Part shown: piece by piece, positions 1 through 41,226 of the stretch
How positions within the stretch are numbered: the stretch's first letter is position 1
Layout: the number at the start of each line of letters is the position of its first letter
Assembly: GCA_002269645.1 (NCBI GenBank)
Contig: NIVC01000109.1
Location: 483,670 to 547,669, forward strand
From: Macrostomum lignano
Taxonomy: Eukaryota
Length of the DNA stretch: 64,000 nucleotides
Direction of reading: 5' to 3'
Program-made: the position numbers and the translations under genes
The notes under the pieces: model-generated
Seen by the model: only the letters and a program-made list of their open reading frames with translations
Database searches by the model: none
What the model was told of the DNA's origin: nothing

Positions 1-3000
1 CACAAATGGTTGCACTGTCAATTCCTCAGAAGATCCTAAGCAAGGAAATAACCGAGTGCCTGTCGATTGTACAGAAATTTATACGAAAATTAGAAGATTC
101 AAGTACGCAACGAGTCTGAGAGACGTGCGACGATTTTGTGAATTTTTACAAGTTTTTTATAGATTACTTCAAGAAGAAGGTAGCTCTTGCGGATCCAAAA
201 TCGACAGAAAATCCGAGCAAGAAGGCATTCCTATTTTCTCTTTACATTTGCTATTACGTTAGAATTGCAGATTTAAACGATCGCAATGAATTTGCTGAGA
301 AAATATGCGGCTTTTTCGATAAAACTGCAGTGCAGATCCAAGACGATTTCATAAAGGAAGAGCTTGACGTTCTCAAGCGAATGCGTGTTCCACGTAAAAC
401 GGCTAGAAATCTTGCCCTTCGAGAGAACGCATTTATTCTTTTCTGCTGTATTTACTGTCAAGTTCCTGTGCTTTTAGTAGGAAAGCCTGGCTGTTCTAAA
501 TCGCTGGCGGTAAATCTGATTCGTAGCAACCTTCGTGGTAAAGATTCAGAAGATCCTTTGTTTCGCCAATACCCATCGCTACGCTTTTTCAGCTATCAAG
601 GATCAGAGGCTTCAACTTCAGAGGGTATTCGTCGAATTTTCTGTAAAGCTGAGAACAGCATCGACGCATGTAAGGCTGAAGATTCAAAGCCTATAGTTCT
701 TATTGATGAAATCGGGTTAGCAGAAAAGTCACGATACAACCCTCTTAAAGTTTTGCACAGTCTTCTTGAGCCTGAGTCTTCACTAGACTGCAAAAGTCGC
801 GTTTCTGTTGTTGGAATTTCAAATTGGGCTCTTGACCCTGCAAAGATGAACCGAGCTATTCATATTTCGCGACCTGACATGAATGAGGATGAACTGTGCG
901 AGACAGGAAAGGCTATCTGTGCATCTGACGGAAGCAAATCTGAAAAGTTAATTTCGGATGAAGTACTCAATAGCGTTGCAGTCGCGTGTCATCGCTATTT
1001 TAAAGACCAGCCGTTTGAAAACTTTCACGGCCTTCGAGACTTTTACTATCTGTTAAAGTTCATTTGCGATCGAAAATCGGATAGTGACAATCAGATTTCG
1101 TCTATTAAAGAGGGCCTTTTAAGAAATTTTAATGGAGACAAGCCATCCCGAAAACAAGTTATGAGACATTTCGAGGATGCATTTCCTGGTCTAAAAAATG
1201 CGGAGATTTTAGATCATTCCATGTCAAGCGAGTCTGTGACTGAAGCACTAATAAACAGAAACTTACGCGATTCTCAAGCAAGACATCTTATGTTGATATA
1301 TGAGAGCGAAGGCTGCCTTGATCTTCTGTGTTTTATGCTTTCCCAAAACCATCGAACGTTTAAAGTCATGTACGGCAGTCAATACGAAAAAGACCAACAT
1401 TCGGAAGAGTTTACGTACAGAAAGCTAAACGAAGTGATGATGTGCATGGAAACTGGAATGGTTTTGATTCTAAAAGACTTTGATTTGATCTACGGCAGTC
1501 TGTACGACATGCTGAACCAAAACTACTCGGAATATGCTGGCAGAAAGTACTGTCGAATCGCAATGGGCGTTCAAGCCAATCAGAATTGTGTTGTCCATAG
1601 AGACTTTCGCTGTGTTGTACTGGTGAGCAAGAAGGAAGTTCGGAGACTAGACCCGCCGTTTTTGAATCGGTTCGAGAAACAAGTATTTGATTTCGAAGAT
1701 AAAATATGCAGCATGAGGCTAGAAAAAGCGAGAAACAGTCTCTCATCTTTGATGGATAATCTCTGTCGTGTTGTTTCTGATGATGTGGTCAGGACATTCA
1801 AAAGAACTGAAGTATTTCAAGGATACACTCCCGATCTCGTTGCCAGCTACCTGATCAAAACTGGTCGATCAGATTTGGAAGATCACCAAGCAATCCGAGA
1901 AATTCTTCCTCTGCTATCTCGTCACATGTTTCCTGATGCAGTTCTTCGGACAACGTGTTCCAAGTTTGAGCACAGCCGACAATATCAGCAAGAATATTTT
2001 GCTACATCTGGATTGATGACGGACCTTGGCACTGTCATGCGCCATGTTGCTAGCTCAGAAGAGTTAATTCAGAAGGTATTTGTGTACACAAAATTTTCGC
2101 TGTATCTGGACATTGTTAAGCCACTGCAAGGCCTTGAATCTCACTCTGTGAAAGAAATTCGCCTGATGGATTTTAGTCGAGAGATTGACCTACTGGACAG
2201 CATCGTTCCTTTCTTTAAAGAGAACAAATCTGATGGAATCCTTTTAGTTCGCATCAAACCTTCGATTGATGAGCGCTACATCCTTCATGTTCGGTGCATT
2301 GTTGACGGACTGTGCCAAAGATACAGCGAAGAGGTTTCGGTTAAGAAAAGCATTGTCTTTATAATTCATGTCCAGCATGAGGACCTCGACGCGCAAAACT
2401 ACTCTTGGAATTGGAGTCCTCTAATAGACTGGAAAGCGTATTTTACAGAATCGCTCAATCCAGAATCTGACGTCTGTCTTTCTGAACTGGTTTTGAGCGA
2501 CTGTGCGAGTTTGATATTTGAAAATCCAGAATTGATTGAGGGCTTGCACAAGAGTGTAGTCACCAGCGCCTTTACAGATGCCATTCGTAGTCCGGAAATG
2601 CTCGACAAAGCAGTTAAATTTTTCAGTCGCTCTACTGAACTAGAAAAGCAGATCAGTTGTTTTATTGTGGAAGAAATGCTGACAAAATCATCAAAGAATG
2701 TACAGCCATTCTCGACGGATCACTGGCTTGTTAAACTCGCACTTGAGACAACGCAACTTGCCAATTTTCTATCTTTTTCAACATTTGTTATGCACGGTGT
2801 AAAAAGCAGCTACAAAGAGAGCCTAATAAAAGTCTTGAGAGCAATGAGTGAATTCGGCATTTTTACCGACGATCTAAGTGACTCCGATTTAATCTTAAAG
2901 GCTCTTCCTGTCATTTTGCAATATGTGCTTCAGAAAGCTTCGTCAGACAGATTTTCGCGTGTACGCGGTCTTCGAAATTTGTCACTTCCGTTTAGCACAT

Positions 3001-6000
3001 TTTTGTTTTGCATCGCATATGATGCCTTTTGCCGCCATTTAAACGACAGAAACACTTTTGTAACTGAGATCGAGAACCTTCTCAAGCAGTTTCTTGAAGA
3101 GTCGGAGTTGTCATCTTCGGACAGTTTACTAGGTACCGATCTGTGGAAACTTATAACGACTGCTTTCTGTGGTCGCGATCGCAGTGAGAATTTGCGCATT
3201 GTGTTACACAAACAGATTGACCAGAGCTCTCAACTTATGGAGGCAGTTTTTAATGTTCTGACACACTTCAAACAGCATGAAAAAGATCTTGCAGACCTAC
3301 TTAACGTTCATCATCACATGAGTAAATTGGTCTCCGGTGTTGCTGATTATGTCGTAAAAGAAAGCTTTGTTGATGGCAACGAGTTTTCAACCACGCTTAA
3401 CAATCTTCTAAATTTATTGCTACCAACCGAAGAAAATTTAAGAAACTTGAACATCAAGGAATTTAATGATTGGCGCAGAGTGACTGTTAGCTTTCTCGGC
3501 ATGCTGAGAGCCCGCAGTGGACTGGAATGTGTGGCTGAATTGGAGGGCATGCTCAAATTTTGCGACTTTTTTCTGGAGCAGAATGGCGACATTGAAATGT
3601 CAAATGTGTTCACTGACCTAAAAGAACGAGGCCTTTTGACTTCTGAAGACAACTCCACACAGCTTCTGCAATGGAGAGCGTTTGCAAATGCGCTGACTGA
3701 AGGTGAAGACTGTAGCGATCGGTTGATTTCTGCTGAGATTAGCTTTTATTATGCTGTTTTAAGTGGTACTAAGTTGAGTGAAAACCTGCTAGAAGACGTT
3801 GTTAAGAAAATATTTGATAGCATTTTGCCTGTCGGATTTGTTGCTATTCTATGGAGCAAAATTAAGTACGAATCCAAGGAGCTGCTGCCCTGCTTCGGGG
3901 AGCTGATGGAGGGCTGCAAGTCATTGGAAAAGCGATGCAGCATTTATTCAATTATCGCCACTTTTCTTACCACCGAAGAACAAGTAGACGTAGAAAGTTT
4001 AATGGAAACAATAGACTTTATGCGCTCTCAGCTGAATAAATCGCTAGCTATCAGTTTGGCTGAAATGGTTGATATTTCTGACATTTTTAGTTACTTTGAG
4101 GAATCTATTCAAAACTGCACAATCACTCACAATGATTTGGTTTGTTTTGGAGACCATCGAGATGATATGCTTGCTATGATTAACAAGCTGGTCCAAACAA
4201 GCGTCGTGCATCCTCTTTGGTTATCTTTTTTGCGATTTCTTAGACGCCGTTTTTCACTGTCTGAGATGGAAACATTCCTGAAGTTTGATCGTGTTACCTC
4301 CGTTGTCAGCAGCTTGTTCAGAGAAGATTTTCTAAAGTTTGGGCGTGGCTCGGAGTTCATCGCAGCCTATCCTCTTCGTTTTCCGTTTGCTATCTGTCTA
4401 AGCACTGATGTGTTTCAGCAAGCTCTGTTTGCTTATCAACAGGGTATGGTAATCAAGGATTGGAATGAGTTTCAGAAGTTGCGGCAGCGGTTAATAAGCT
4501 TAAAAAATGACGTACCAACTTTGCGGGGTGTTCTGACCGACTGTATCAGCGCCTACGTAGAAATGGTTGGTCTAAGAAAGGCACTTAGCAATTTCAAAGT
4601 ACAAGAGAAACAAGTAACCCGCGAGGTTTTGGGCCTTGTGAATTTAACACCGGCCTCATCAAGCTGTCCAGCAATTGTTCGACTTTTGTGTGGTGAAGTC
4701 GAGAGCAAATTCAGTTGCTTCAATCTCACAGCCCAATGCAACAATGAAAGTGTGTGCTTAGCTACTCTCTACTATGCAGGACTTCTTGTGTGCTTACCGA
4801 GTGAATTCAAAGAAGGCAGTCTACTGCACGAGCTGGGAAAGATGACTGTAACAAATGCCAGCACTAAGCTTGTTGAGCATTTTGCATCGCGCGAAAACGA
4901 CAATAGACAGATTCCAATTCATGTCAGAACATGCTCGTGTTATAATGTGACTATCAGCTCCGAGAATGATGAGAATCCGAATTCTATGTATCCGTGTCAA
5001 TTTTGTCAGTCGGAGTGGACGCAGGACTTGTCTTCAAAGATGGTAGAGTTTTCTGAGGAGTTCCTGACCGTCGTAGTGCCCTTGGTATCAGAGTTCATAT
5101 GCATTGTAATGAAGGCTGTGCTGCTTGATATCGAGCGTGTGAAATCTTCGTCCTCTCCTGCCAGTGGCGATCTAAAGATTGAGGAAAAGTTCAGACAATT
5201 ACAAAACATTCTGCACCTGTCAAATGAGGAGACAACCTGGTTGTTACATTCGATCATGGAAAACAAAGAGGAATTGTTCTTCAAAGTGCCGCAGTCTGAT
5301 AGCAGTGAATTGTTCGAGAATATGGCTTTCTTTGTAGGAAAGCACGTGCTGAAGGCAATGCATAGTATCCGCGAGTTCAAGCACCGTAGGATGACTGAGC
5401 GTCGGGTTGTTGAGAACTTTGCACTGGCTTGTCTTGTTGACAACGTTGATCTGTCAGACGACCAGCTGCCAAGTGAGCTGATGCCACCAGGTCGTTCGAA
5501 GGAGGATGTAAAGGCGATCGCAGCCAATCCGCTTTTCTTCCCAAAGCGCCAAGTGACATTTGATGATGCTTGCATGCTCTTTGACTGCCAGCTTGCTGAG
5601 GGCGAGCGACGTCCACTGATGCATTTGATTTTACGATTTTCCGACAAGCTCGTCGGAATGCGACACGCTTCGAAGCTTGTGCATTGGCATCAGACAGTAC
5701 TCAAAAAGTCAGAGAACGTATTGAGCCAAGAAGAGCTTGAAGCAATGCGAATTGATGATTTTATTCGGCGATTCCGCAACTCAGACATTCTGGAATCGGC
5801 GGCAACTGCTTATAGAGCGCTGAGGCCTTCAGCAGATGCAAGCCCTGACAACCCGTTTGACAAAACTCGCTCGCTGCTCAGCAGCCTCTTGACTGACAGA
5901 ACTGAGGTCACCAAAGTCTTGAAGGAAGCTGTGGATGGTGTCAATGAGTTCTTTGAACATGTTGCCGTGCTGTGCATCGAGGAGAAGCATCTCCCAGAGC

Positions 6001-6884
6001 TGCTCGGCGATGATGGCTCGTGTGTGCTGCCTCTGTGCGACGTAGTGACTCGGCCAGACAGCGTTCCCAGTTGCTCGAAAGAAGAGCTGGATGAGCTCGT
6101 GCGAGTTCTGGCCAGCTGTCCTGGAGGCGGTGACCCCAGCGTCCACTGGGAGCTGCTGGAGGCCGCTCTGGCGAAGCGGCTTCTTGCTAGCAAAGGATTC
6201 GGCTGCGTGGAGCCGTGGGAGGGTCGTCTGAAAGGTGCCACCGAGAGAGACCTGGGCACCCTGGTGTCCGCATTTAGACAGATGTGCCAGTGTGAGCGGC
6301 TGTCCGAGGCAGAGCTGGCTGCGTTCCAGCGTCGGCAGAAGGAGGACTCGAGTCGGGCAGCCCGCACGGCCGCGCTGTGCCGCACGCTGCTCGGCTTCTG
6401 CCATCGAATTGGCGTGCCAAGTGGCGCCTGCACCGTCGCCGAGTTTCTGCAGCAGCACGCGGGCTCGCTGGCTGGAGGCGCTGCGCTGGCCGAGGCAGAG
6501 GCGGAAGGCGCGGGCGGCCTCGCGCTGTCAAAAGTGCCAGCGCTGCTGGAGGCTGCAGAGCAGGAGCAGTTCAGCGTTATCTTCGCCGACCTGCAGCGGC
6601 GTTTCGGCGGCCACGAGGAAGCGGCGGAGCGGGTGGCGGCCTCCGTGCACGAGGGCGACAAGCCGGCGCTGCTGGCGCTTCTGAAGAGCGCCTGCGTCCG
6701 GCTGCTGATGGCCGACAGCACCCAGTGCGGCCTCACCATGGCCGACCTGCTGGCCGACGCCTCGCTGCTGCCTGTGGGCGCTCCGGAGCTGCGGCTTCGC
6801 AGCGACCCGGCGTTGGACAAACCGGCTATGGAGCTGCTGTTCCCGCTGGCCCACTGCCTGCACAGGAGCGTGAGTGCTGCTTGA
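1..6884 (+). CDS. RNF213: RNF213/mysterin-like giant AAA+ ATPase, 3' part (5' end outside window); end of AAA3, AAA4-AAA6, E3-module region, C-terminal domain
   Basis: ORF 138-6884 (2248 aa, uninterrupted). Walker A VGKPGCSKS (nt ~477-503), Walker B LIDEIGLAE (~699-725), VGISNWALDPAKMNRA, FHGLRDFYYL, LILKDFDLIYGSLYDMLNQNY and LDPPFLNRFEKQ all match RNF213 AAA4/AAA6 signatures as I recall them. RPLMHLIL...HQTVLKK resembles the RNF213 C-terminal domain. Homology continues upstream of 138 (EITECLSIVQKFIRKLED, SLRDVRRF) across two compensating 1-nt frameshifts. Confidence 0.93.
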
Positions 6885-6925
<41 letters not shown>

Positions 6926-6977
6926 GTCTGTCTGTCTGTCTGTCTGTTTGTCTGCCTGTCTGTCTGTCTGTCTGTCT
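6885..6977. repeat. (TCTG)n microsatellite immediately after the RNF213-like stop codon
   Basis: Direct tetranucleotide repeat visible in the sequence. Confidence 0.95.
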
Positions 6978-8693
6978 AGCTATTGAGTTCACACTCTCCG
7001 CCATCAAATTTCACTGCAGGAGCAAAACAAGACCAAAGGACAGCGCAAGTTTCAGAAGCTGCTTAACCGGATGTGAGCAACAGTCATTGCAAGCCTGCAA
7101 TGCACGCTCTATTAATAAACTATGCACTAAAATCGTTTATTTTCGATTTACTTCACGTTGCGTTCCGTACTACTTATATCCTATTGTTTTTGTGTAAGTT
7201 TTGCCAGTGCAAGAAAGACACGATTAACATAATTTCAAGAATATTTATAACAAAAAAACAATTTATTAAGAACCTTGAAAAACATTTAAATTAAAAGTCT
7301 TTGTTTCTTTCTGGCCTGGCTAAACACGTTTCGTATATTTATTTTTAAAAATTCATTTTTTGTTCTTCAAATTCCATACTTTAGTACTTCTAAATAGTAG
7401 TTTAAATCGAATATATCACCAAGCTACCCAATTCTAATAATATCCTTAGGTATTTTATTATAACCAACGCACTGATACGTATATATCTAGCTAGAGGAGG
7501 GGAGAGAGGAGAGGGAATAGATATGAGAAATAGAAGAAGAGAGAGGAGGGAGCGAAAAAGAGAATGTAGAGGAAAAAAAGAGATAAGAAGAGAGGAGAGA
7601 GTTGAGGATATGAGGAGAGGAGAGGAGATAAGAAGAAGTGAGAGAAGAGACACAAACCTTGAGCGGGCCGGATTGCTATTGTGAGTTTTCAAAGGACCCG
7701 AAGGCCCGAGATTGAGGCTTTTGCCCACCCCTTCTCGACAGCCTATCGAAATAAATTCAAGCCTAGCAATCTGTTTTTATGTATGTCTAGAATCCTCAAT
7801 TGTTTGTTAATTGATCGCTTAAGCTAACAAATTTAAATTAAAAAACAAATATAATTTACTTTTTTCCCTCGGTGATTTGCTACACTTATTATTATTTTTC
7901 TATCATTCACTAAAATGAAGTCTAATATATATTTCATAATATTAAATACACGAACACATATTCTAGCTAGTAGCCTTGTACTCTGAGATTCATGCGCCCT
8001 AGTTTTTTCTCTGTTTAAATAAAAAATAAACCTGTTTACTCCAGTCCTACCGGTCATTTTCCCGTCATTTTCATAACTACGCGTCTTTGGATTTAGTTGA
8101 TTTTTATAACTAAAACTATTATGCTAGTTTCAATTAGAAGTATTATAAAATGTCTAAGAATTGCTCAAAGCTCTGACTACTTACTCTAGTATATAGTAAA
8201 TACGTAGTGAAGATGCTTGCGATTACGCGAAAAATGAGTTGATGACATGAGACAGGTGCTTTCGCTGTGAGTTGGCAAGTGCATGTGGGGATGTGGGGAT
8301 TTTCGTTTGCATAGAAAGAGTATAGCTCAATCAGTTGTAACACAAAAATTCTCACCTCTATGCATTCAGACTGTTAACTTAGTTTCTTATTATTAAAGAC
8401 CAAGCAAAAAATCCTTAATGTTCTGGATGGTCCATAAAATGTTTTCTGTTTTTAGCATCTAGCTAGCTAGCTACTTTTGGGCATAGAGCGCGAATTACCC
8501 TCGAATTTTGCTACGACGCATCAGATCTGTCGCGTCGGTTTTGACCTCAAAATCAACGCCCAAATTATCACTTTTGCCGTGTTTTGCGAAGCGGTGGGCA
8601 TGCCATTTTTACTTTTTATTTGTAACTAACTCAAGAAAGTAAGCTATAGGCAACTCAATTTTCAGGCTATGTGGATCGATGAGCCAAATGAGT

Positions 8694-10723: not shown

Positions 10724-13700
10724 ATGGAGTGTAAAATTTGCAACGTGAAAAAGTTGACATCGGAATATCCGTCTAATCCGCTGTCTGATCTGTGCGAGCA
10801 CCATCACCTGCTGGTGTGCCTGCGGGTAAGGTGGAACTGGACTGATGCATATGTACCTGCTAATTATGTACCTAGCTGATAGCCCTTTATTAAAGTTGTT
10901 TGGCAGACACGAACACTAGAGGATAGATAGCGTAGGGAATATACAATGGATAGTAGGGAATAGACGGTGTAGGGAGTAGACAATGTAGGGAGTAGACAGT
11001 GTAGGGAACAAACAGTGTAGGGAGTAGACAATGTAGGGAGAAAACAGTGTAGGAAGTAGACAGTGTAGGGAGTAGACAGTGTAGGGAGTAGACAGTGTAG
11101 GGAGTTGACATTTTAGGGAATAAACACTGTAGGGAGTAGACAATGTAGGAAGTAGACAGTGTAGGGATTAGACAATGTAGGGAATAGACAGGCTAGACAA
11201 AGCTCGGCAAAGAAAAGAGAGTGCCAAAGGTTGGGCATATATTGAGTAAACATGATGGGGGGGATGAGAAATATCAGTAATCTGACAGCTTAGAAACAGA
11301 ACGGGATCGCGGATGAATTTACATCTAAGTTGCTTGCGCATTCAATGGCTTCTATTCCTGCAGTGCGTTATCAGAGAAGTTGACAAGAACTACCAATGCC
11401 CAGTTGAAGGCTGCTCCATCATGATTGATGCTGGCGAATGCATTCCACTGTGGGAGTGCAAGGCTAAACTGAAGCAGCTCACATTTGACTACTCAGATCG
11501 GGAGAGAGCTCAGGCTGCTGAGGCTGCTGCTGCTGCATCTGCTTCCGGTGCCTGTGAGGATTGTGACCGATTCAATTGTATCGCTTGATACTTTTCCTAA
11601 TTTGTAGCTAATTCACGTTTTCTATTTAACTTCAGCTTCTGGCATTTTCACTGTGAACCTCACCACTCTGCTGGGCGAGTCTTTAAGTGTTGATTTGGAC
11701 TCCAACCAGCCGGTGGACAAGCTCAAGGATCAGGTGCTGCAGCAGTGGACAGATCGCAGCAAGAATAAAATTAAACTGCTGTTTAATGGGGACGAGTTGA
11801 CTGTGAGATGCTTTTGCTTTATAATTGCGTTTTACTTATTTATTCTTTGATTTCCACCTCTGAACTTATCTCAGAGTATCCGTGAGTACATGTAATATCC
11901 CCGAAGTATCCCAGAGTAATCCGCCCCTCCGCCCATATCCCAGAGTAATCCGCCCCTCCGCCCCATATCCCAGAGTAATCCGCCCCTCCACCCCATATCC
12001 CAGAGTAATCCACCCCTCCGCCCCATATCCCAGAGTAATCCGCCCCTCCACCCCATATCCCAGAGTAATCCGCCCCTCTGCCCCATATCCTAGAGTAATC
12101 CGCCCCTTCGCCCATATCCCAGAGTAATCTGCCCCTCCGCCCCATATCCCAGAGTAATCCACCCCTCCGCCCCATATCCCAGAGTAATCCACCCCTCCGC
12201 CCCATATCCCAGAGTAATCCGCCCCTCCGCCCCATATCCCAGAGTAATCCGCCCCTCCGCCCCATATCCCAGAGTAATCCGCCCTTCCCTCCGCCTCATA
12301 TCCCAGAGTAATCCGCCCCTCTGCCCCATATCCCAGAGTAATCCGCCCTTCCCTCCGCCCCATATCCCAGAGTAATCCGCCCATCTGCCCCATATCCCAG
12401 AGTAATCCGCCCTTCCCTCCGCCTCATATCCCATAGTAATTCGCCCCTCCGCCCCATATCCCAGAGTAATCCGCCCTTCCCTCCGCCTCATATCCCAGAG
12501 TAATCCGTCCCTCTGCCCCATATCCCAGAGTAATCCACCCTCCGCCCCATATCCCAGAGTAATCCACCCTCCGCCCCATATCCCAGAGTAATCCGCCCCG
12601 CACCCACCCGCTCCGGCAGGACAGCCAAAGCTTAGCATCAGCCGGCCTCAGCAGCGGTTGCCGGGTGCAGGTGCTGTTCGTGCTGCAGGAGCTGACGCCG
12701 GACCTCACAGAGGTTCGCATGTGCATGTCCTGGGGCTGGCCGGGCGGCAAGGACCACACGGATTACCTGGACACGGCCTGCTTCACTTTCTCGGCCGGCG
12801 CCACCGGTCGCATCCAGTTTCTGCACTGCATCGATTTTCGCAGCAGCCATCGGCAGAACGCCATCAGCGCCGGGATCAGCCAGACCTACAATCAGGTGAT
12901 CCGACACGACGGACCAGCTAGGAAGTGTGGGCAAACTCGAACTTCGGAATCTTCTTTCACTGTCTGGCCGCAGAATCTTGACGAGCTTCGAGCTCCGGTG
13001 GGCAGATTCGACCAGCAGAACGTTCGAACTGTGCCGGTTACCCACCTGTTCTTTGTCACCTTTACCTATCGAAATACCAATATTGACAGGTTCAACCACC
13101 CGCAGCTGCAGGTGAGTTATGATTATTGGCACTGGGCCATTGTTTTCTGAATTGCCGCCTCTGGCTTCTTGTTTTCTGTGAAAATCGCCAAATCTCTTGA
13201 GAATCGGCCTATCATGAGAATCGCCCTCTTTAAGAATCACCTTTTTTGAGAATCGCCCTCTACTTGAGAATCGCCCTGTACTTGAGAATCGCCCTCTTCT
13301 TGAGAATCGCCCTCTCTTTAAAAATCGCCCTCTCTTTTAGAATCGCCCTCTCTTTAAAAATCGCCCTCTCTTTTAGAATCGCCCTCTCTTTAAAAATCGC
13401 CCTCTCTTTTAGAATCGCCCTCTCTTTAAAAATCGCCCTCTCTTTTAGAATCGCCCTCTCTTTAAAAATCGCCCTCTACTTGAGAATCGCCTTCTTCTTG
13501 AGAATCACCTTCTTGAGAATCACCTTCTTGAGAATCACCTTCTTGAGAATCGCCCTCTTCTTGAGAATCGCCCTCTTCTTGAGAATTATTTTAAGAATCG
13601 CGGCCCTCTTTTTGAGAATCGCCCTCTTCTTTGAGAATCGCATTGAGAATCGCCCTGTTATTAAGAATCGCCAACTCCCATGAGAATCGCCCTGTTATTA

Positions 13701-14011
13701 AGAATCGCCAACTCCCATGAGAATCGCCAACTCCCATGAGAATCGCCAACTCCCATGAGAATCGCCAACTCCCAACTCCCAAATGAATGGCGCAGGTATT
13801 CGACCAGCGCGATCCCCAGACGCCGCTGTGCAGCACCAATTTGAATCCCCGAGCCAAGGGTCTGGTTGTCTGCCTGCTGAGCAAACCCGGTGGTCGCGGT
13901 GCCTGGCAGGTGACAGACGTCGGCCAGCCGCTGGCCGAAGGCAGCATCAGAGACTACAGACCGGTTGAGAGAGCCTGCGTTCGAATCATCAACTCAACTC
14001 GACGCGTTTGA
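10724..14011 (+). CDS. RING-like Zn finger - ubiquitin-like - TerD-like fusion protein, copy 1 (388 aa, 5 exons)
   Basis: Exons 10724-10825, 11364-11553, 11636-11802, 12620-13111, 13796-14011; all introns GT..AG, phases compatible, total 1167 nt. CKIC...CEHHHLLVCLRC...CPVEGC (RING-like); VNLTTLLGESLSVDL...[20 protein letters not shown] (Ubl, no terminal GG); WGWP...DYLDTAC...RHDG...VTHLFFV...PQLQVFD...PLC...WQV...GSIRDY (TerD-like). The exon-2 donor is the least certain boundary. Confidence 0.82.
10960..11190. repeat. 16-bp minisatellite (gtagggagtagacagt)n in intron 1 of copy 1
   Basis: About 14 imperfect tandem units. Confidence 0.9.
11905..12600. repeat. ~29-34-bp minisatellite (ccccatatcccagagtaatccgcccctccg)n in intron 3 of copy 1
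   Basis: More than 20 tandem units; source of the spurious ORFs at 11840-12638. Confidence 0.93.
13200..13775. repeat. 18-bp minisatellite (gagaatcgccctcttctt)n with a 36-bp higher-order block, intron 4 of copy 1
   Basis: Tandem units; alternating dimer at about 13305-13470. Confidence 0.92.
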
Positions 14012-15775: not shown

Positions 15776-18700
<2,925 letters not shown>

Positions 18701-23163: not shown

Positions 23164-23310
23164 CTAAAAATGAGAAGTTTTATTTTTTAATAATTCGTGG
23201 CAGTATTCGTAAGCAAACTTCAGAAATTTCATAATTTCATCAGACAGATGCTTTTAACTTAAAACTAATTTAATGAATACGCTCGTAATAAAAATGTTTT
23301 ACGTACAATA

Positions 23311-26635: not shown

Positions 26636-26814
26636 CAATACTTGTCATACAATGCCATTCTTGATACTTTAGTTACTGATAATAAAGGTAACAGAATACT
26701 ACATGCATACAATTAACAATTGTGTAATTTTTAGTACAAAATATTGTATATTAAGTAAAATATCTGTTTAGTCTTTTCTGTAACACCAGTAAACCCATTT
26801 TCCAGCGAGCATAC

Positions 26815-28700
26815 CTGGCTTAGTTTCGGTCTGGCTTGGCTGGATTTTGGTCTGCGGCATTTGATGAGATGCAGCGGCTGGTGATGTAGTAATCTCTGAT
26901 TCTCGAGCAACTGGTGCTGGGGATGCTGCAAATAATGACCTCCTTTTCACCTCTTTTTCACCGACGATGCCAATAGCAAGCAGTTTCGATGTCTCTCCAC
27001 GAGAGCCCATGCTGGCATGCAGCGTTTTTATGGAATTGATATGGCCATTGCACTCTTTAATCCGATCAATTAACTTTTTACCAGCCTTTCGTCGCTGGTT
27101 AACTTCATTCTGTATGTTGGCATCAGTATCTGCTGCTTCGAAATACTTCAAAGCTTGAAGGACCGACTGCTCGAGTGCCTTAACAGTTCTTGGCGAAGAT
27201 GACAAAAAACTTCTTAGTGCTTGCTGTAATGAAATTAAAGAGTTGATCACGAAAAGACTCAAGTCCTGTGCGATAGTATCGTCTGTGTTATCAAGTAACT
27301 GTTGGAAGTCGGATGACTGCTGCTCTCTCAAGAATGGCAGCGTTTCCTTTCTACACTCATACATACTGGCTAAGACTTCCCACACATTCGGATCGACACC
27401 ACCAAACGCTCCATCGACATCACGAAACACTTCTAAATACTCACTGAGTGATGCAGTGCTCTCGCAATGGCTGATGAACTCTTCAATAAGAGCCGTTGCG
27501 TCTTCATAGTTGATGAAGGCTTCTTTGCAGAAACTGGCTACATTCTTAGTATTCTCGTCATCAGAAACTTCACTAGCCGATGCATATGACTCTCCGGGTG
27601 AGTCAGCAGAACATTCATTTGACGTAAAAAACTCGGTGAGAAAGAACTGAAGCAGATGCACTCGACTGAGCCAAATGTCGCGCAGCTGGATACTGCGAAG
27701 CTTTTCAACAATCGAACTGGAGATGCCAAGTTTAGAGACAATGCCCTCCTCAAGCTTAAACTCGATTTTTGAGCCCTCGGAAATAAATGATTCTATACTT
27801 TCTAACAATAAGCTTCCTCTCTCTACCTCAACCCAGAACTGCTTGTAGGCAGTGTATGCATCAGGTAGCATTTTGTCAAGCACATAGCTGCACTGAACAG
27901 TGATCTGAGCTCCTGGTCTCGAATAGACTGCAGATTGAGACTCGGCTTCAAACAAATTGCGTGAGCCACCAGAAGCAGGCTTGGATCGGACAAACACTCT
28001 CCTGAACAACTCAGATTGGACAAGTGACTTCATTAATTCAAGGTTCTGCACATTTCTGATTTCGAATATCTGAAAAACCAAATCATCGCTTCTAAAAGAA
28101 CCAATTGAGTTAAAAAACTGCTGCTTCAATGACTGGTATCGAGATTGCTTTTCGTTCAGGTCAAGCAGCTTTAAGTTCATTTGAGAGTTTTCTCCCGAAA
28201 TGAGGAACAGAAAATCAAAAATTTGGTCAACAACAGCGCACTGCTCGTTCCAGCTTCTTTTATTTTGCTCTAAGCAACGTACAGTTTCTTCTGTATGTCC
28301 ATCTCGACCAAAGTTGACAAAAAAGGCCTTCAGCAGCAGGTCAAAGTAGTCATACAAACTGGACTCAATGCTTCCACGAACAAGTTTTCCCACCTTTTCG
28401 AGTCTTTCAAAAATGGCAACGAATTCTCTGAAGTCAGCAAAAGACAAGTGCTTGTCAGCATCTCTATTGAAAAATATGCTGGCAAAGTCAGCAATGCACT
28501 GCAGTTTGTTGTTCAGTTTCAGACGAACAGCCTCTGCAAGCGGTTGGATGCTGGGATCCGAGTCGCTGGTCATCCACATCCACATGAAGTTCTTCTCCAG
28601 CAGTAAAGGCAGCAGCTCCAACGCATTTGTTGGACGATGCTGGCTTGGCTGTGCCGAAAGCAAATGCTCCAGACTGAGCCCAAAAATCTGATAGAGTGAT
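26815..28700 (-). CDS. Exon B2 of RNF213 N-terminal stalk-like gene
   Basis: Acceptor ttttcag at 28701, in phase with exon A2; ORF open to 26768 with an internal GTATGC donor at 26814. RIKECNGHINSIKTLHASMGSRGETSKLLAIGI resembles RNF213 KLRDSARNLEWLKTVNESHGSVERSSLTLATAI as I recall it; FLREQQSSDFQQLLDNTDD...INSLISLQQAL fits invertebrate RNF213-like stalks. Confidence 0.68.
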
Positions 28701-29760
28701 CTGAAAAGTATGGTATATTTTTCATTAAATTATTAAGGATCAAGTAATTTCCAACCTATCATAAAATACATGAGCGGAAAAGCAGAATAAAAGCTGGCAC
28801 GAGGTCAGACGCGCATTTTATAATGCGTGTAGAGTGTTGGCGAGGCAGCAGAAAAAACTTAACTGGCATGAAATATTTTCTACTTTAAATTTTGTTACAA
28901 TATTAAGTATAGTTTACTGTATAATAGGCTAAAATCGAGGTTACACAGGCGTTGTAGAAGAAACAAGGAATATTAAAGCCTTTGAACTAAAATAATACTG
29001 TGGCAGCAATCCTAATTAAAATACGAGCAACTGAGGCATGATTCTCCTCTCAGCGATAAACCATTCAGTAAGCGCTCTGTTTTACCTGCAAACAACACCA
29101 CAATTTTGAATTCATTACACGCCGAATTCTGTTGGGACCCCCACCGAAATTAACTATCTCCTGTAGAGGCCAAGATGCTACAAAAAATTTACAAATTTTG
29201 TTAATCTTACTCACAAATAGTGAACCACGAGCATAAAGTATAAATACGGTGTTTCACTTAAAGCTCCAAAACAGTCCTGCTTATGATTCCATTAGAATGC
29301 GACCCCGTAAAAATGCTATCTGTAAGTCAATAAAAGCATGACAGCTAGCCGTCCATCAGTATTGTTATCGTTGGGCATTTTTCCAAGGTTATATCAAAAT
29401 GCTCAAACAAGGTGACAGCTTTTTGTAGCTCGTTGACATTTTTTAAAATCATCTGACATCTGACACCCAGCTATTAGAAAAAGATTACAAATACATGATC
29501 CGTGACATCTAAATCTAAATGAACTAGTAGGCTAGCTCCGAGGAAAGGCCGGCGCTTCGTTAAAGAAATAAAAAGTCTCTTTTACTCTTACCTATCGAGG
29601 ATGGGATAACCGTTTGCATGATACTTGCTACTAACCGAAGACTACTTTTACCGATTGAAGACTACCAGAGGACTATTTTAACTTCTGTTAAAATCAAGCA
29701 ATAGGGTTTTTACTCGTATTTGTGTCTGGGCAAATTGAAATTGGAATTGCGGCTTTAAAC

Positions 29761-31308: not shown

Positions 31309-32030
31309 CTTTAAACAAGCCTATTTTTTCTTCAATTCTTTAAGTCTCCGTCTATCTACCAGTTATGTGCTAAGGACTGACTCTTTATTCTATTTAAATG
31401 ATTACGCTCGTAGAATGAAATTCTAATACAAAAACCCATCCATATGCCAAGAACGACTTAAGTAGATCGGGAAGCTTTGTTTTTACTTAAAATGATTCAT
31501 GAAAATTTACATATCTTACGATCATGTGTAACTAAAATATACACTTCGTTCTAATTAGTGCCAACCACTTAAAGCGAAATTGAACTAGGCGTATTTTTTC
31601 GATAACTGCCAAAGCCTCTTCAGAATTCTTGCTAATAAGAAGACGACAAAGAATTTATCTTATGTATCTTACACATGTATCTTATCCTATTAAATAAGCA
31701 TTCGTCGATCTCCTAAAACTTAGCTATTGCTATTCTGTGTTTAAAAGTGACAATTTTCTTTCTCAGTAGTATCGATATTATTTCGCACAAACCCAGCCTT
31801 AAACTTTTTCTATAAGAAATAAAGTTACACGTCTACATCAGTGGTCCTTCCAACATGCAAGATCCATTACTGACAAAAGCTGTTTTATGATGCCTCATTA
31901 AATGAGGAACAAGATGATTTTAAATGACAAAAAGTGCTGGATAAGCGACACTAGAACAGACGAAAATCCTAGCAATGTAAAGATCAAGGTGCTATTAACA
32001 ATTATGAAGAAATAAAATTGAGGTTCCTAC

Positions 32031-34078
32031 CTTGACAAGTCATCAGTGCAAAATACATCGTTCGGATGCTGAAAGAACTTCAAAAGCTCTTCTTTTTGCT
32101 GTTTTTCGAAGCCGCTATTGTCACTAACTTGTTGCAGACAGACTTGGAATACAATGTCAGTGAGATCAGCAGACTTTCCATCTTCAACATTGCTTTCAAT
32201 CACTGCTCTAGTCAGCCTCTTCTCATTCAAAACTTCAAGTGCTGCTTCCTTGCACAAACTGACGAGAGAACTCTTCTGTGACATCTCAATGAGTGGCTTT
32301 ATCGTTGCACACACGGACTTGTGCAGGTAGTCACAACTCAACCGAATAAACTGCCACATTACATTTCTTTGCTGTCCAACATCGGCTGCTAAAATATGTG
32401 CTACAAAAAAATCTGCGAAATTCCCGAGGCAAAACTTGATCAGCCAGTGCGTCTTCGATGAAAATATGATAGACAAGAACTCGATTGCGAAATTTTCATC
32501 CAAAAAACCTTTGATGCCAAACAATAGAGCCAGGTCACGGCGATTGGGCGCTGAATTGTCATTCTCGTATTTTGAGCTTATCGATGCAATTATGGCTCTC
32601 CGAACAACAGGAAGAACCTGCTCGTGCCACACTGACTCCTCGACACAGTACAATTTCTTTACTCTTTGATAGATGTCACACAACCGCTGCCAAGAATCTG
32701 TCTGCAGCTCAGCTAAAAGTTTCGTGTACATCAATGAGGATCCAAAACTCTGAACCCAATCCTTGAGCGAAACACTCAAAATTTCAGAAGATTCGAAGGC
32801 GCTCAGCGTCTCATCAGCGTCTTTAATCTTTAGAAATTCTTCGAGCAGCGATTCGAAGCTCGTGAAGTCTTCTGCGTCATTAAAAACTGCGGCTGCAATG
32901 CTCACAAAGTTGCTGCAGCTGATGCACTTGAGCAATCCAGATTTGACCAGAGCTTCAGTAAAATCAGTTCTGAACTTGTCGCCACCTCGTTCAACAAATC
33001 CGAGATTCTTCACAAGCTGTACGAACTCACCAGGTGGTGCAGACGGGTGCAGTACCTTGGCGCAATAGCACAGACTCAGGAAAGAAGGCAGCGACGAGTC
33101 TAAAAAGCGCATGGCCTGTGAGCTGATGCTTTTTATTGCGGGCTTCTGCAAGAAACTCAAAAGCAGAGTGGCCTCGTCAATTTTTCTAAAAGACTTGTTT
33201 TCTGGAGCGAATCTGACATGAATGAAGAGCGACAGTCGGCACAGCAGAATTCCTCCTCCCGGCTTCAGTGGGAACTGCTCTGCAAATGGAGGACTCAGCA
33301 TTCTCTTGATGACGGATAGGAACTCAGTCGTATTGACTTCAAGCGCTTTCTTGCTATCATTCTCTGTGACACTTCTGAGCCATTTGGACACGAGGGAAGA
33401 GTAGCACTGATCGATAAATTCGACTGGATCGCTGCTGCTTACTAGCGATGTTGAGTCGGCCATGGCCAGTGAGACTGCATGAGAAGCGAATATCCGCCAG
33501 AACACGTTGGACTTTCGGACAACTGAATCAATGAACGGCTCAAACAGAGCGTCGAAACATACTAGTCGGTCTCTGTTGAGAGGCCGACTTTCCAGTTCAC
33601 TAATCATGCCATCAGAAGGTGCAATACCCCTTTTAGAACAGCATTTGAAGATTGTTTCTAGAATATTGGCACAGTTATTCACAGCTCTTTGAATTGGTGC
33701 TGAAACAGACGGCCCCATATTTTTCAGCAAATCTTGGAACTGTCTTTGATTGGTCAATTCTAATATCGGATTTCGACTGTGCAATCTGTAACTATAGACA
33801 AAGTCATCAAGTCGCTCGGATAGAAAGAACAGTTTCCAAGACGGAATCGCATAAAAATCTTTAATGGAATCCACCTGCTTTTTCAATGAAAAAGATCTGT
33901 TGGTCTTCTTTACGCAAATAGAGAGCGAAAGTGTAATGTTACACTTAGCGTCTAGAAGCAACGTCGATAGAGTTTTATTAAGTTGCTGATTTTCTGAAGC
34001 GTCCCTCTTGGCATTCAAAACCTCATCCAAAGTAAACTTGACGACGTCCGCGATATACAGACGGAACTCGCAGGGCGT
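32031..34078 (-). CDS. Exon A2 of the stalk-like gene (helical, ~683 aa)
   Basis: ORF 32027-34084; acceptor ttgcag (phase 0) and donor GTAGGA (phase 2); colinear protein similarity to exon A1 (EFRLYIADV, ELESRPLNRDRLVCFDA, FLDSSLPSFL, WQFIRLSCDY). Confidence 0.78.
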
Positions 34079-36251: not shown

Positions 36252-36420
36252 CAGAGTTCTACGAACATACAACAGCGCTTACATATGCTTTCTTGCTACA
36301 TTCGTCCAACCGTAAAAATTCTTGACACATCAACCAAGGTTCCTGCAAAGTAGAGAAGTTATAAGATTGTACGTGTTAAAAAGTATAAATATTTTTTCTA
36401 AACGTATATTGGATACCTAC

Positions 36421-37420
36421 CCTAAAAACTGATTGAACAAATCGATCCGAAAATCCAAGTGCGTTGACAGCTTTAGCTTCGACCCGGCTGTTAAATTTGG
36501 TGTCTCCATCAATATCAAGTTCTCTTCTGGCCTGTTCCGTAGTCATGGCACCTGTATCAATCGATGTCCATAATTTTTTACATGCACCGATTGCAGGGGG
36601 AATCAGTTTATCCAGCAGATAGCGGCATTGAACACAGACGATAACGCTTTTCACATTCAGTCGACTTTCCTCAGGATCTTCGGCACAGGAAGATAAGTTG
36701 CATTTAATGAGCATTCTTTTGAAGATCAAAGATTCGGCAAGGGAATTTAGCAATTCCATATTCAAAATACTATCGATTTCGAAAATCTGCTTAACGAGAT
36801 TGTCACTTCTAAACTCGACAGTGATTGATGTTTCATACTGCAGCTTCAGATCTTCATACTGTGACTTTCTGTCATGCAAATCGGGGAGTTTTATCTTCAC
36901 TTCATCTGTTTCGCTGCTGACTCGGCTCAGAATTTCAAATACTTCATCAACCATATGGCACTGTTCATTCCAGCTTCGAACGTTGGCTTCGTGAAACTTC
37001 ACCAGCTGAGTGGTATTCTTACTCTGTTTAGCACTGGGAAAGAATGCAGCTAAGAGTTGGTCAAATAAGCCGTAAGACCGGCCTTCATTACTGCTGTTCT
37101 TTTTCCCTCTGCGATTCATCTCCAGTGAATCAAAGACGCAGACAAAATCGTTGAACTCTTGAAGGGAAACACCTTCAGCATCAGCTTCAGCAGATAATCT
37201 CTTCGCAAACTCTTTGATGCACTTAATTTGAGCTCCAACACGAAAAAATAAATTTTCTTTTAAAGATTGGATGTCCGAATGCGAATCTCCGATCATCCAT
37301 GTCCAAAGAAAACTTTTCTCAAATAGCGTAGGCAGCAGGTCGAAAACGGTCGGCGATCGATGATTTGGTAATCCTGCAATAAACTTCTCCAGAACAGCGC
37401 AGTAAGTTTTGTACACATGT
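36421..37420 (-). CDS. Exon B1 of the stalk-like gene (corresponds to the 5' half of B2)
   Basis: Acceptor cattgcag in phase with exon A1; LLPTLFEKSFLWTWM...EQCHMVDEVF...FRSDNLVKQIFEI aligns with B2; GTAGGT donor at 36420 (phase 0). Confidence 0.75.
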
Positions 37421-37493
37421 CTGCAATGACAATATTGTGGTACAATTAAAGTTCTAGATTTTATGTTAGCAATAATTTAAATACGTTTGTATG

Positions 37494-37846: not shown

Positions 37847-37961
37847 GTTGTATGTAACAATAAATCTAAATTTAGAAGACTCAGAGTCAATAGATACGAC
37901 TATGGCAATAAAATACACGTAGATACTACGAAGAGACTTGCACATCGGCAAATAAACTTAC

Positions 37962-39955
37962 TTGTAAAGAAATTCACTGGAAAAAGCAGGTGCATTCTCT
38001 TGCAACCAATCCAGAATCACATCTGTATCGCTTTCATTACTTGAAGTAGAGATTCGTTGGTAAAAAGTTTCGAAAATGATACGCAATAATTCAGCTGTAT
38101 TCTGCTGTGCATCTCGCATGTTGATCTCAATTGAAGCTTTGGTAAGCGGCTGTTCAGCCAGCAGACTTTTGCCGCAATCTAAGCAAACAGTTCGGAAATG
38201 ACAATTTTTGGATCTCTCGAGCAAGAATGACACTACAGAACAGGTTGACTTGCAATAGTAGTCACAACTTAGACGAATAAACTGAGCCAACACAGCAGGA
38301 AGCTCATCTGAGTTAGAAGCTTCAATATGGCTCAAAAGTGCCGAGTCGAAGGCGTCGAGACATAATTTGATCAGCCACTGGCAGTCCGAGGAGAAAACTT
38401 TGGACATGAATTTCAGAGTGAATTGTTCATCAAAAAATCCGCTCAAGCTGAGCAAGTCATTCAGAGCTCGTCGGTTTGATGCAGAGTTTTCGTTTTCGAT
38501 TTCAGACCCGATTGAGTCAATGACTGCAGCTCGAACGACTGGAACTCCTTCGGCATGCCAAAGCATCAAACTCTCGCACTGCAGGCTTTTAGCCTTTGCA
38601 GTTATTTCGCAGAGTGGCTTCCATCCTTCTGTTTTGAGTTCAGCCAGCTGCTCGTTAAACAAAACCTGAGAGCTGCAGTCTTTCACCAATTTTAGCGAAG
38701 AGGAATCTAAACATTCGGAAGACTCAAACGCTTTCACTGTCTCTACCACTTCATTGATTGTTAGGAACTCAATCAGGAGATCGCTCAAAGCTGAATTACT
38801 CTCTGCATCGTGGAACATTGAGCTGAAAATCACAACAAAATTATCTGAGTTCAACTCTCGGACAAGACCGGAACTTAGAAGAAACTGAGCCAAAGCAGAT
38901 CTGAACTTGTCCGCTGCGCGCTGGATGAATCCGAGACTGTCGACAAGCAGAATAAAGTTTGCAGGAGATTCAGAAGAATGCAGCAGCTGGGCGCAATGGC
39001 AGAGGTGCAGAAACGATGGTAAATACGAATCCAGAAAGAAAACTGACTGAACATCAACAGAACCCAAATCTGGCTGTTGAAGGCATTGCAGTAACCACTG
39101 AGCTGCATCTTTAGGCCAGAAAGTGTCGCCATCAGCTTCGAATCTTTGGTGAATATGCAGCGAAACTCTACACAGCATCAGCTTTCCACCGGGCTTGAGT
39201 GAACCAAAACCAGCTGAAAAATATTGCGTGACGGCTGAAATAAATTCGACTGACTCTGCCGCGATTTGGTCGGTGATAACAGACTCAATCCATGTTTCAA
39301 TGAGCACAGCACAGCATTGATTGATAAATACAGATGGCTCAGAATTGTCAAGCACAGTTTGACTACCAACACCAGCTAGTGAAGCAGCATGGAAGGCAAA
39401 GATTTTCCAAAATAAAGCTGGTTCTCTTGCAATGGACTGCAGGTATGGCCGAAGAAAGGCGTCAAGGCAAACCCGTCTGCCGGCATTCAAAGGACGAATT
39501 TCGAACTCCTTCAGTGCACCATCGATAAGACGAGTACATCGGTTCGGACAGTTCTGGACGATGATGTCAGATATTTTAGCAGCAGAAACTGTAGCAGCAA
39601 CACCTGTTGAATAGGTAGCGTCCATCTGCTTCAAATCAGGAAATGTTGCAGGTTGGTCGCAATTGCTGAGCTCATAGCAGTATTCACTGCTAACAATGTC
39701 TGCGGCGAGAATAAAAACTCGCCACACAGGTAGTGAGTAGAAGTCACAAAGCTTTCTGATTTTGTACTCAATGGAAGAAGATTGATTCCGTTTGGTATTT
39801 GTTAGCACTAGCAAAGCTGTCATATCACATGTGGCATTGAGCACAGCACTGATGAGTGCATTCTCCTCGTCAACTGAAAGATTTTCGCCCTTTGAAGCCT
39901 GGTCAAGAAAATGTCTGGCTACATCCGCAATGAAGAGCCGAAATTCGAATTCGAC
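37962..39955 (-). CDS. Exon A1 of the stalk-like gene (~664 aa)
   Basis: Acceptor cattttag (phase 0), begins VEFEFRLFIADV; GTAAGT donor at 37961 (phase 2); includes ORF 37958-39844; paralogous to A2. Confidence 0.78.
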
Positions 39956-40404
39956 CTAAAATGAAGTAAATATCAGTATGATAGTCAATCATTTGCCAAA
40001 AGAGCAACTACGTACAAGGGTAAAGCAGCTTCTGTATCGAATCAAATGAAAAGGTTTAGGACCAAATATAATACATGTATAAAGCTTAGCTTTGGCCAAC
40101 AAGATGTACACACAAACAATCTCTAATCCTAGTAAATGAGTATGCTAATTCACTCACATAGCAGGACTGAGCACTCGGTAAAAGTTGAGCGTAGTCAGTT
40201 TCTTGTATGCACCAGCTCTACAATTCAATCGAAATTTTTGGTGTTGTGCTTATATTTAAATATGTAAAATTAGATATAAAATTAGAGGCATGAAATTATA
40301 GGTATTATTTGTGCGTACTTAGTACAACTATCTGGTACAACTTTATCAGAGCAAGCCTATTTGCAGAAGATGAACCAAACAATTTATGATAAAACAGTAC
40401 TCAC

Positions 40405-40684
40405 TAGTTCGAGTGCAGATTCACTTGGTGATGCTTTGATTGACTGGAACAGAGCTCTAACACATGGGCAGGTTTCTGGACTAAACTGGCAAGACCCAAC
40501 CGTAACACTAGCTGGGATTTCAGGCAAGGCAGAGTTTGGAGCAACTAGTGGGTCCGGTGGAACCTTTGGAATCCTGAGCCGACGCGCTGGTTGATGGCTG
40601 GCGGCATCATCAGCTGCTGCTTCTGAATCGGAGCTACCTGACTGCTGTCGCGCTCTCAGAGAGTCTTGCTTTCGAGCACGCTTT
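40405..40684 (-). CDS. Low-complexity 5' exon of the stalk-like gene
   Basis: ttttttag acceptor, GTGAGT donor, 280 nt open, phases match both neighbours. Confidence 0.62.
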
Positions 40685-40805
40685 CTAAAAAACAGAATAT
40701 TTAGAGATAAAAGCAGGCTACATCTGCTGAGAAGAGCGACAATATGAAGCTAAATTCCCAATAACTAGATTATGGTCTAATTTGATTCCCTGCTTCATCA
40801 CTTAC

Positions 40806-41226
40806 TCGAGACTTCGCAGCTTCCTGCGAGCAGCCGTGTAATAAGCCTTGCCCAGAATGACACGGAAGAACTTCAGTCCCTTCACTTTCGGCTGCACATG
40901 CTCAGTCAGCCACAGATTTAGTTGGCCAGAGTCCAGAAACTTCTTTAGCTGAACCAGCTGCTGGCTGCTGGTCACATCGAGGCTGAACACAACCCGAGAC
41001 AGTCTACTCAGCTCCTTGGCTTCGTCGCATTCTAAATCATCACTGCTACTGCTGCTGGAGCTGCTCTCAGATGTTGATGCAGTTTCAATCTCGATGGTCT
41101 TTAGACCGCCAGTAAATGGTAACAAATGGGACAAATCGCTTTTTAACTGTAGAAGGCACCTGCGAAGCCTCTTTAACACTGTAGCGCTGGCATTGTACTT
41201 TACAACAGCTGTCTCCTCATACGGAA
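40806..41226 (-). CDS. 5' internal exon of the stalk-like gene (needs an upstream phase-1 exon)
   Basis: caattttag acceptor, GTAAG donor, includes ORF 40802-41179; phase 2 end matches the 40684 exon. Confidence 0.62.

Follow-up and report, generated by a model that had tools for sequence, protein, structure and literature searches.

The stretch of DNA analysed here, hereafter the window, comprises 64,000 nucleotides (nt) of the flatworm Macrostomum lignano and is best explained as a transposon-rich, segmentally duplicated piece of that genome. It contains the 3' part of a giant RNF213-like AAA+ ATPase gene, two tandem genes whose products join RING, ubiquitin-like (Ubl) and TerD domains (RUT1 and RUT2, our labels), a minus-strand gene that probably encodes an RNF213 N-arm and linker and nothing more, and transposons, which account for the other long open reading frames (ORFs). 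Our five-exon model of RUT1 is 100% identical to the M. lignano GenBank protein BOX15_Mlig002613g1, whose gene is placed on contig NIVC01000109.1 of assembly GCA_002269645.1. GenBank calls four genes in the portion of the contig covered: three on the plus strand, of 5,070, 388 and 389 amino acids, and one of 2,654 amino acids on the minus strand; the first ends near window position 7076, and the last has its 3' end near 22242. The host genes are all related to RNF213 or to ubiquitin, tandemly duplicated and convergent, a layout that an original prediction, made from the sequence alone, had described correctly. Rfam and tRNA scans of the window gave no match. On balance, we lean slightly towards reading the locus as two old gene families lying side by side, most likely as separate genes, whose clustering reflects local duplication and retention. 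A literature search covering TerD with ubiquitin or RING in eukaryotes, invertebrate RNF213-like genes, and Macrostomum with RNF213 did not find these architectures described.

The giant gene and its main motifs lie as follows.

1..7076, plus strand: 3' part of the RNF213-like giant AAA+ gene, identified by phmmer against PDB, a Pfam AAA match and the 5,070-amino-acid GenBank call.
480..710, plus strand: AAA4 motifs, with Walker A GKPGCSKS at nt 480-503 and Walker B IVLIDE at nt 693-710, by motif position.
4932..5006, plus strand: Cys4 motif CSC-x18-CQFC (residues 1599-1623) at the position of the RZ finger, by alignment and profile.

Within the window this gene is one ORF of 2,248 amino acids (138-6884, plus strand), open at the window start and continuing upstream, that covers AAA4-6, the ubiquitin ligase (E3) shell and the C-terminal domain (CTD). 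Residues 14-624 match human RNF213 residues 2708-3331, from AAA4 to AAA6, and the mouse protein as well (phmmer against PDB, E ~1e-73), so that the dynein-like AAA4-AAA6 are homologous to those of vertebrate RNF213 (mysterin). The Walker A and B motifs of AAA4 are intact and align with 'LVGKPGSSKS' and 'VVLDEVGLAE' of the human protein. AAA1-3 lie upstream of the window and are present in the 96%-identical paralog P0005; no search returned the 5,070-amino-acid product itself, and P0005 is thus the sole basis for judging its AAA1-3 and its N-arm. At the paralog locus L003, identity to the giant gene is 96-97% with ratios of nonsynonymous to synonymous divergence (Ka/Ks) of 0.13-0.15, which indicate purifying selection. 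The flatworm product also resembles vertebrate RNF213 in size (~5,070 against 5,207 amino acids). The remaining 1,600 residues of the ORF matched no PDB chain in a single-sequence search, and outside the M. lignano paralogs they gave just two weak BLASTP matches. A profile built from residues ~1540-1930 and their relatives matched the RZ finger and CTD region of RNF213 (human, E 1e-22; mouse, E 3e-14; human and mouse matches together, E 1e-22 to 5e-14), and the E3 shell and CTD are therefore homologous too.

No RING was found in this ORF. A RING regular expression had no match, and nowhere do eight Cys/His ligands stand in RING spacing; the richest 50-residue stretch holds seven Cys/His without the Cys-x2-Cys pairs required for a RING. 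The ATPase is thus RING-less, as originally predicted, and differs in this from vertebrate RNF213. The same expression also found no RING in any of the 120 closest homologs; this sample spans cnidarians, echinoderms, molluscs, brachiopods, rotifers and flatworms, with 86 proteins longer than 3,300 amino acids. A RING lost locally, as had been supposed, does not fit an absence that is clade-wide. By homology, the giant gene is a member of a large, multi-copy invertebrate clade in which the RING was apparently never present or was lost long ago.

The RZ finger had been described as degraded, and here the alignments point to a different picture. Pfam ZnF_RZ has no match in the big ORF, it does match the relative P0089 (77 bits), and a true RZ finger occurs in that homolog alone among the 120. 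In alignment A6, C1599, C1620 and C1623 share invariant columns with the true RZ finger of P0089, and HMMER overlays the Cys4 motif on 'CPNGH...C...CIDC' of human RNF213. A CxC...CPxC pattern lies ~700 residues before the C-terminus in 53 of the 86 full-length relatives; these matches are position-specific, because the same pattern averages just 0.67 occurrences per protein anywhere. In human RNF213 the metal ligands of the RZ finger are C4505, H4509, C4525 and C4528, with C4516 as nucleophile and H4537 as base (PMC11549300). The Cys4 variant retains three metal-ligand cysteines, with a cysteine two residues past the first in place of the ligand histidine, and has no equivalents of His4509, Cys4516 (the nucleophile) or His4537 (the general base), so that the known transthiolation site of vertebrate RNF213 is missing from the CxC...CxxC of the flatworm protein. 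The RZ position is therefore better described as a conserved, clade-wide Cys4 variant, predicted to be unable to use the known catalytic cysteine, than as a decayed finger. Judged from these comparisons, neither a RING nor the RZ nucleophile is present in most invertebrate relatives, which nonetheless retain a putative Cys4 knuckle at the RZ position.

Two paralogs deserve separate mention. P0004 (locus L002, NIVC01001505.1, 23726-23746) lacks the equivalents of big-ORF residues 924-1984, which make up most of the E3 module and include the Cys4 motif; in this naturally E3-less RNF213-like gene model, the AAA part runs straight into the final 260 residues. P0007 bears the UniRef name 'CARD domain-containing', and Pfam at E<=0.01 did not reproduce a CARD.

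Downstream of the giant gene lie the two RUT genes.

10724..14011, plus strand: RUT1, 388 amino acids, exons 10724-10825, 11364-11553, 11636-11802, 12620-13111 and 13796-14011, by GT-AG model and GenBank identity.
15776..18700, plus strand: RUT2, 388 amino acids (389 in GenBank), exons 15776-15877, 15960-16149, 16267-16427, 16838-17338 and 18488-18700, by GT-AG model.

The Ubl is the most directly recognised domain of the two proteins, with a match to Pfam ubiquitin PF00240 of 35 bits at residues 104-172 of RUT1 (cut-off 25.4) and likewise 35 bits in RUT2. An AlphaFold2 model of RUT1 has a mean pLDDT (predicted local distance difference test) of 87, with values of 85-94 over residues 1-50, and its ubiquitin-like part resembles ubiquitin and NEDD8 in Foldseek at template modelling (TM) scores of 0.8-0.93. 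Foldseek with the whole model returned mostly ubiquitin matches; the sole non-Ubl structure near the top, 2qng, is of unknown function and was not used. The Ubl is internal and has no C-terminal Gly-Gly, and is therefore not a conjugatable modifier.

Direct Pfam scans of RUT1 and RUT2 matched neither TerD nor RING, even at E<=1, and the case for membership in these families therefore comes from homologs and profiles. Searched exhaustively by phmmer with RUT1 residues 176-388, a set of 1.84 billion representatives yielded 74 homologs. Among the 59 homologs scanned by Pfam, PF02342 TerD was carried by 55 (best E 8e-22) and ubiquitin by 26, and the highest PF02342 score within the RUT family is 72 bits. 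A profile of this family, headed by RUT1, matches the bacterial TerD structures of Klebsiella (2kxt) and Streptomyces (3ibz) at E 3e-13. At the level of profile or family, the C-terminal 200 amino acids of RUT1 and RUT2 are thus a predicted TerD beta-sandwich. The RUT proteins differ from bacterial TerD in being eukaryotic and in being fused to RING and Ubl. The 3ibz stretch HTGDNITGEGEGDDE, the Ca2+-binding motif of TerD, falls at 'HSGD...G.H' of the family consensus in the hmmsearch alignment. At the same position, alignment A2 has 'RHDGPARK...SESS' in RUT1 and 'RHDGESRK' in RUT2, and no Ca2+-binding motif of the GDN..GDGDDE type stands there.

The RING is likewise confirmed only at profile or family level, and so remains a putative domain of RUT1 and RUT2 themselves. 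Its eight zinc ligands (C3, C6, C24, H26, C32, C35, C46 and C51) do not vary among the 17 sequences compared, which come from several phyla. Pfam RING matches in RUT relatives are weak, and 18 of 23 weak PDB matches of the family profile are RING fingers (best E 0.09). The finger is of C3HC4 type with a non-canonical His-to-Cys spacing of 4-5 residues, and its 'CPxxxC' end resembles RING1 of RBR ligases. The combination of a non-conjugatable Ubl and a C3HC4 zinc finger in one chain recalls parkin-type Ubl RING E3s, from which the RUT proteins differ in their order (RING, then Ubl), in lacking IBR and RING2, in having TerD as a third domain and in the His-to-Cys spacing, which is 2-3 residues in the parkin type; E3 activity of RUT is a prediction. 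The two RING-Ubl-TerD genes of the original prediction thus stand, on GT-AG models, a Pfam Ubl, and TerD and RING at profile or family level. Of the profile hidden Markov model searches it had proposed, those for RNF213 and ubiquitin succeeded, that for TerD PF02342 succeeded through homologs and the family profile, and that for RING gave no direct Pfam match.

We found the same architecture far outside M. lignano. RING-Ubl-TerD proteins, always annotated as uncharacterised, occur in the gastropods Haliotis and Gigantopelta; they also occur in the bivalve Potamilus with an extra VWA domain, in the sea star Patiria (a tandem pair as well), in amphioxus (Branchiostoma), in Glomeromycota fungi and in the amoebozoan Mastigella. 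Given this spread over animals, Glomeromycota and Amoebozoa, RING-Ubl-TerD is an old eukaryotic family; it is widespread in eukaryotes and appears unstudied. In molluscs, Ubl-TerD is associated with VWA in two forms, an adjoining VWA gene in Haliotis rubra (L006) and a VWA-RING-Ubl-TerD fusion in Potamilus streckersoni (L007). Bacterial ter operons have vWA (TerY) partners, which the mollusc association recalls.

RUT1 and RUT2 share 77% amino acid identity overall, and their divergence is a mosaic: synonymous divergence (Ks) ranges from 0.09 to 1.2 across segments, and Ka/Ks is below 0.5 in all, again as under purifying selection. The RING and the TerD core stand at Ks ~1, against 0.09-0.26 for linker, Ubl and TerD ends, a pattern that suggests an old duplication followed by partial gene conversion between the tandem copies. 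The TerD had been called variable, and its core is indeed more diverged between RUT1 and RUT2. Diversifying selection on this segment, which the variability might have signalled, was ruled out by a Ka/Ks of 0.38 with Ks ~1, the flanks having apparently been homogenised by gene conversion. The introns and 5' flank of the pair are largely minisatellites with units of 16, 30, 18, 33 and 34 nt and an (ATAG)63 array (10953-11191, 11907-12599, 13196-13766, 15076-15718, 16457-16708 and 17370-18268); the exons are common to both genes and the intron repeats are not.

Facing the RUT genes from the minus strand is a series of segments related to the N-terminal part of two full-length M. lignano RNF213-like proteins, P0004 (3,618 amino acids) and P0005 (3,411 amino acids as modelled, its ORF continuing to ~5,000).

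40552..41233, minus strand: first exons, matching P0004 residues 16-201 (tblastn 92% over 16-158 and 57% over 157-201; Ka/Ks 0.37).
37961..39955, minus strand: cassette A1, P0004-type, residues 227-890 (tblastn 88% over 665 residues; intact 628-residue ORF; Ka/Ks 0.40).
36274..37419, minus strand: cassette A2, diverged, 33-35% to residues 888-1604 of P0004/P0005, the ORF ending after 346 residues.
32030..34078, minus strand: cassette B1, P0005-type, residues 549-1232 (tblastn 82% over 684 residues; intact 685-residue ORF; Ka/Ks 0.35-0.44).
26768..28708, minus strand: cassette B2, P0004 residues 888-1478 (tblastn 90-91%; Ka/Ks 0.17-0.25).
21862..22276, minus strand: degenerate piece, 5' part of cassette 2 (tblastn 53-72%; DNA repeats D2 and D3, 75-87%).

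The minus-strand ORFs 40805-41233, 37961-39955, 32030-34078 and 26942-28708 have 82-93% identity to residues 16-1478 of P0004/P0005, and as modelled the region is a short leader followed by two tandem cassette pairs, A1-A2 and B1-B2. The homology of B2 stops at 26942, at a donor-like site GAG|GTAAAG, and its ORF stops at 26768 with no AAA exons beyond; tblastn with P0004 residues 1479-2386, which include AAA1-3, found no match anywhere in the window. The minus-strand ORFs had no PDB match by phmmer. A profile of the last 250 residues of B2 matched human RNF213 at ~1320-1520 (E 0.013), and in Foldseek an AlphaFold2 model of moderate quality (pLDDT 67) found one structure with a probability above 0.13, mouse RNF213 (probability 0.98, E 0.17), so that likeness to vertebrate RNF213 extends to the N-arm and linker by profile and fold. 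In mouse RNF213 the N-arm spans residues 1-1290 and the linker 1291-1774 (PMC7311170), and by this map the end of B2 corresponds to the linker that follows the N-arm. A 'stalk-only' RNF213 paralog had been predicted here: the N-terminal-only copy is upheld, and the word stalk gives way to an N-arm with part of the linker, in two tandem cassette pairs.

Whether these segments make a working gene depends on how their features are weighed. They could be pseudogene fragments or the product of an assembly inversion, with the 2,654-amino-acid GenBank model an annotation artefact. Cassette A2, truncated after 346 residues and without the conserved linker segment, suits such decay, as do the degenerate fragment at 21862-22276, the young retroelement right downstream of B2, the repeat-rich nature of M. 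lignano assemblies and an analogous copy in Gigantopelta with a mid-exon breakpoint. A2 and the 21862-22276 fragment are themselves, by the look of their sequence, decayed. Four ORFs of 346-685 residues are nevertheless free of stops despite Ks of 0.12-0.26. Against the full-length paralogs, B2 has a Ka/Ks of 0.17-0.25, B1 of 0.35-0.44, and A1 with the leader of 0.37-0.40. These equal the values between other paralogous cassette copies (cassette 2, 0.17 between the pair of full-length genes; cassette 1, 0.37 between L003 and L004); neutral drift of the window copy would give ~0.6, well above the 0.17-0.44 seen. A separate annotation models a cassette-only protein, P0204, and the plus-strand gene has its own N-terminus upstream, in its 5,070-amino-acid product. 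An assembly inversion behind the convergent N-arm gene is unlikely, since a second, independent contig has the matching layout and orientation. A homolog search with B1 returned a single 666-amino-acid M. lignano protein, and the 2,654-amino-acid GenBank model and P0005 were not among the returns. We regard a non-functional origin as improbable. Intact long ORFs and purifying selection like that of the full-length paralogs make a real protein probable, and the minus-strand gene is thus probably a real N-arm/linker-only gene, a partial duplicate with no ATPase or E3 parts. Membership of a multi-copy invertebrate clade and the company of a separately encoded N-arm-only paralog are further differences of the giant gene from vertebrate RNF213.

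Linkage between the two families was counted at nine RUT-type loci. At three of them (the window, M. lignano L004 and Gigantopelta L010) the RUT-type gene has RNF213-like DNA no more than 10 kb away, and no RNF213-like sequence was found within that distance at the other six (L005-L009 and L011), which represent a diverged M. lignano paralog, Haliotis, Potamilus, Patiria, Branchiostoma and a sister Gigantopelta locus. Nor was a RUT gene found 5-10 kb downstream of the P0004 and P0005 genes. The linkage in related genomes that had been anticipated is therefore a mixed result, present in L004 and Gigantopelta L010 and absent from the 10-kb flanks of the other six loci.

Several observations weigh against reading the two families as separate genes. 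The counts cover flanks of 10 kb only. Contig NIVC01000475.1 (L004) carries the 3' end of the giant ORF, two RUT genes and reversed N-arm cassettes with the order kept; its RUT genes are 98-100% identical to those of the window and its N-arm cassettes just 73-81%. In the gastropod Gigantopelta aegis, the RUT-type gene P0182 lies 4 kb from a truncated RNF213 N-arm copy and is convergent with it.

L010, CM027797.1 19539593-19582339, at 36883-42747, minus strand: 1,188-amino-acid gene of Gigantopelta aegis, convergent with P0182.

In its last exon this gene copies the N-arm of the RNF213-like P0100 at 92.6% DNA identity; full-length P0100 is found at a distance of 450 kb, and in the opposite direction, 250 kb off, there is a second RUT-type gene. 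Homology and ORF of the copy both stop at a breakpoint inside the giant exon. By a rough estimate, recurrence of the layout in two phyla is improbable under random placement, which makes a functional link possible.

Such a link would take the form of a split, ubiquitin-based immune module, in which the RUT proteins recruit a ubiquitin-conjugating enzyme (E2) in trans, their TerD or Ubl docks on the ATPase, and the N-arm-only protein acts as a sensor, decoy or adaptor. The tight convergent cluster and its repeated order on the second contig speak for it, as does the Gigantopelta parallel, with a truncated N-arm copy and full-length RNF213-like genes within 0.75 Mb. The absence of RING and RZ nucleophile from the ATPase points the same way. 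Ka/Ks is moreover higher for the N-arm cassettes (0.35-0.44) than for the AAA part (0.13-0.16), and fast evolution also marks the N-arm of primate RNF213, its putative pathogen-recognising part (PMC11549300). We nevertheless consider this module unlikely. RING absence is clade-wide and extends to species whose examined RUT locus had no RNF213-like sequence within 10 kb, so that the premise of a RING and RZ lost locally and made good by the neighbours is not supported. Two thirds of the RUT-type loci (6/9), the sister Gigantopelta locus among them, have no such neighbour, and the RING-Ubl-TerD family also occurs in fungi and Amoebozoa. The recurrent partner in molluscs is instead a VWA domain, fused or neighbouring. 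L004 may be a plain copy from whole-genome duplication, and the Gigantopelta copy ends at a mid-exon breakpoint, as a random partial duplicate would.

If the locus holds two separate old families, as we prefer, the giant protein may still work as a scaffold or coat-forming machine driven by ATP, and any ligation of ubiquitin by it would have to bypass the RZ cysteine. RUT1 and RUT2 would act as small RING E3 ligases, with the Ubl as a docking or autoregulatory module. TerD domains have been proposed by the Aravind group to recognise specialised nucleotide derivatives (PMC7159879), which suggests that the RUT TerD may serve as a ligand- or Ca2+-sensing module or as a targeting module. The N-arm-only protein might bind the targets of the N-arm and act as a competitor, bridge or adaptor. 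A broader and quite improbable view is that RING-Ubl-TerD ligases, N-arm-only proteins and RING-less, RZ-less RNF213-like ATPases work together as a spiralian set. Target recognition or mimicry would then fall to the N-arm-only protein and the sensing of Ca2+ or a small ligand to the TerD, and the RUT RING would carry out the ubiquitin-transfer step beyond the reach of the giant ATPase.

The rest of the window is occupied by mobile elements and repeats.

23308..26635, minus strand: young long terminal repeat (LTR) retroelement with 242-bp LTRs that are 100% identical and with Pfam RVT_1, RNase H and zf-CCHC.
44594-46432, two ORFs: fragments of a hAT-like transposase, matched weakly in Pfam by Spin-doc zinc finger, DUF4371 and hAT dimerisation.
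~49611-57842: Mutator-like element with inverted subterminal arrays at 49611-50146 and 57009-57842.

The LTR element was inserted ~130 nt downstream of the B2 stop; its ORF (23891-26416, minus strand) has gag, protease, reverse transcriptase and RNase H in one frame, with no integrase seen. The arrays of the Mutator-like element have a 48-65-nt unit and are 93-98% complementary. Two ORFs lie between them: one encodes FLYWCH (52516-53046), and the other, a MULE transposase with a RING at its C-terminus (52907-54775), contains a 60-204-nt coding tandem repeat. Purine-rich blocks, with GC and AT skews both ~+0.5, lie at 42000-44000, 48000-49600 and 58000-60000; they include a degenerate (AG)n array at 43249-43871, and two of them bracket the Mutator-like element.

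RNF213, a major disease gene in humans (Moyamoya disease), encodes a giant ubiquitin ligase of innate, cell-autonomous immunity, and M. lignano is amenable to RNA interference and transgenesis. The most durable results of this analysis are a clade-wide, RING-less, Cys4-variant RNF213-like family and a widespread, seemingly unstudied RING-Ubl-TerD family, in which a domain known from bacterial stress and anti-phage systems is coupled to the ubiquitin machinery. N-arm-only copies can, it appears, be retained under purifying selection, and two phyla have such copies tail-to-tail with RING-Ubl-TerD genes. If the spiralian set were real, it would represent a modular invertebrate counterpart of vertebrate RNF213 immunity.

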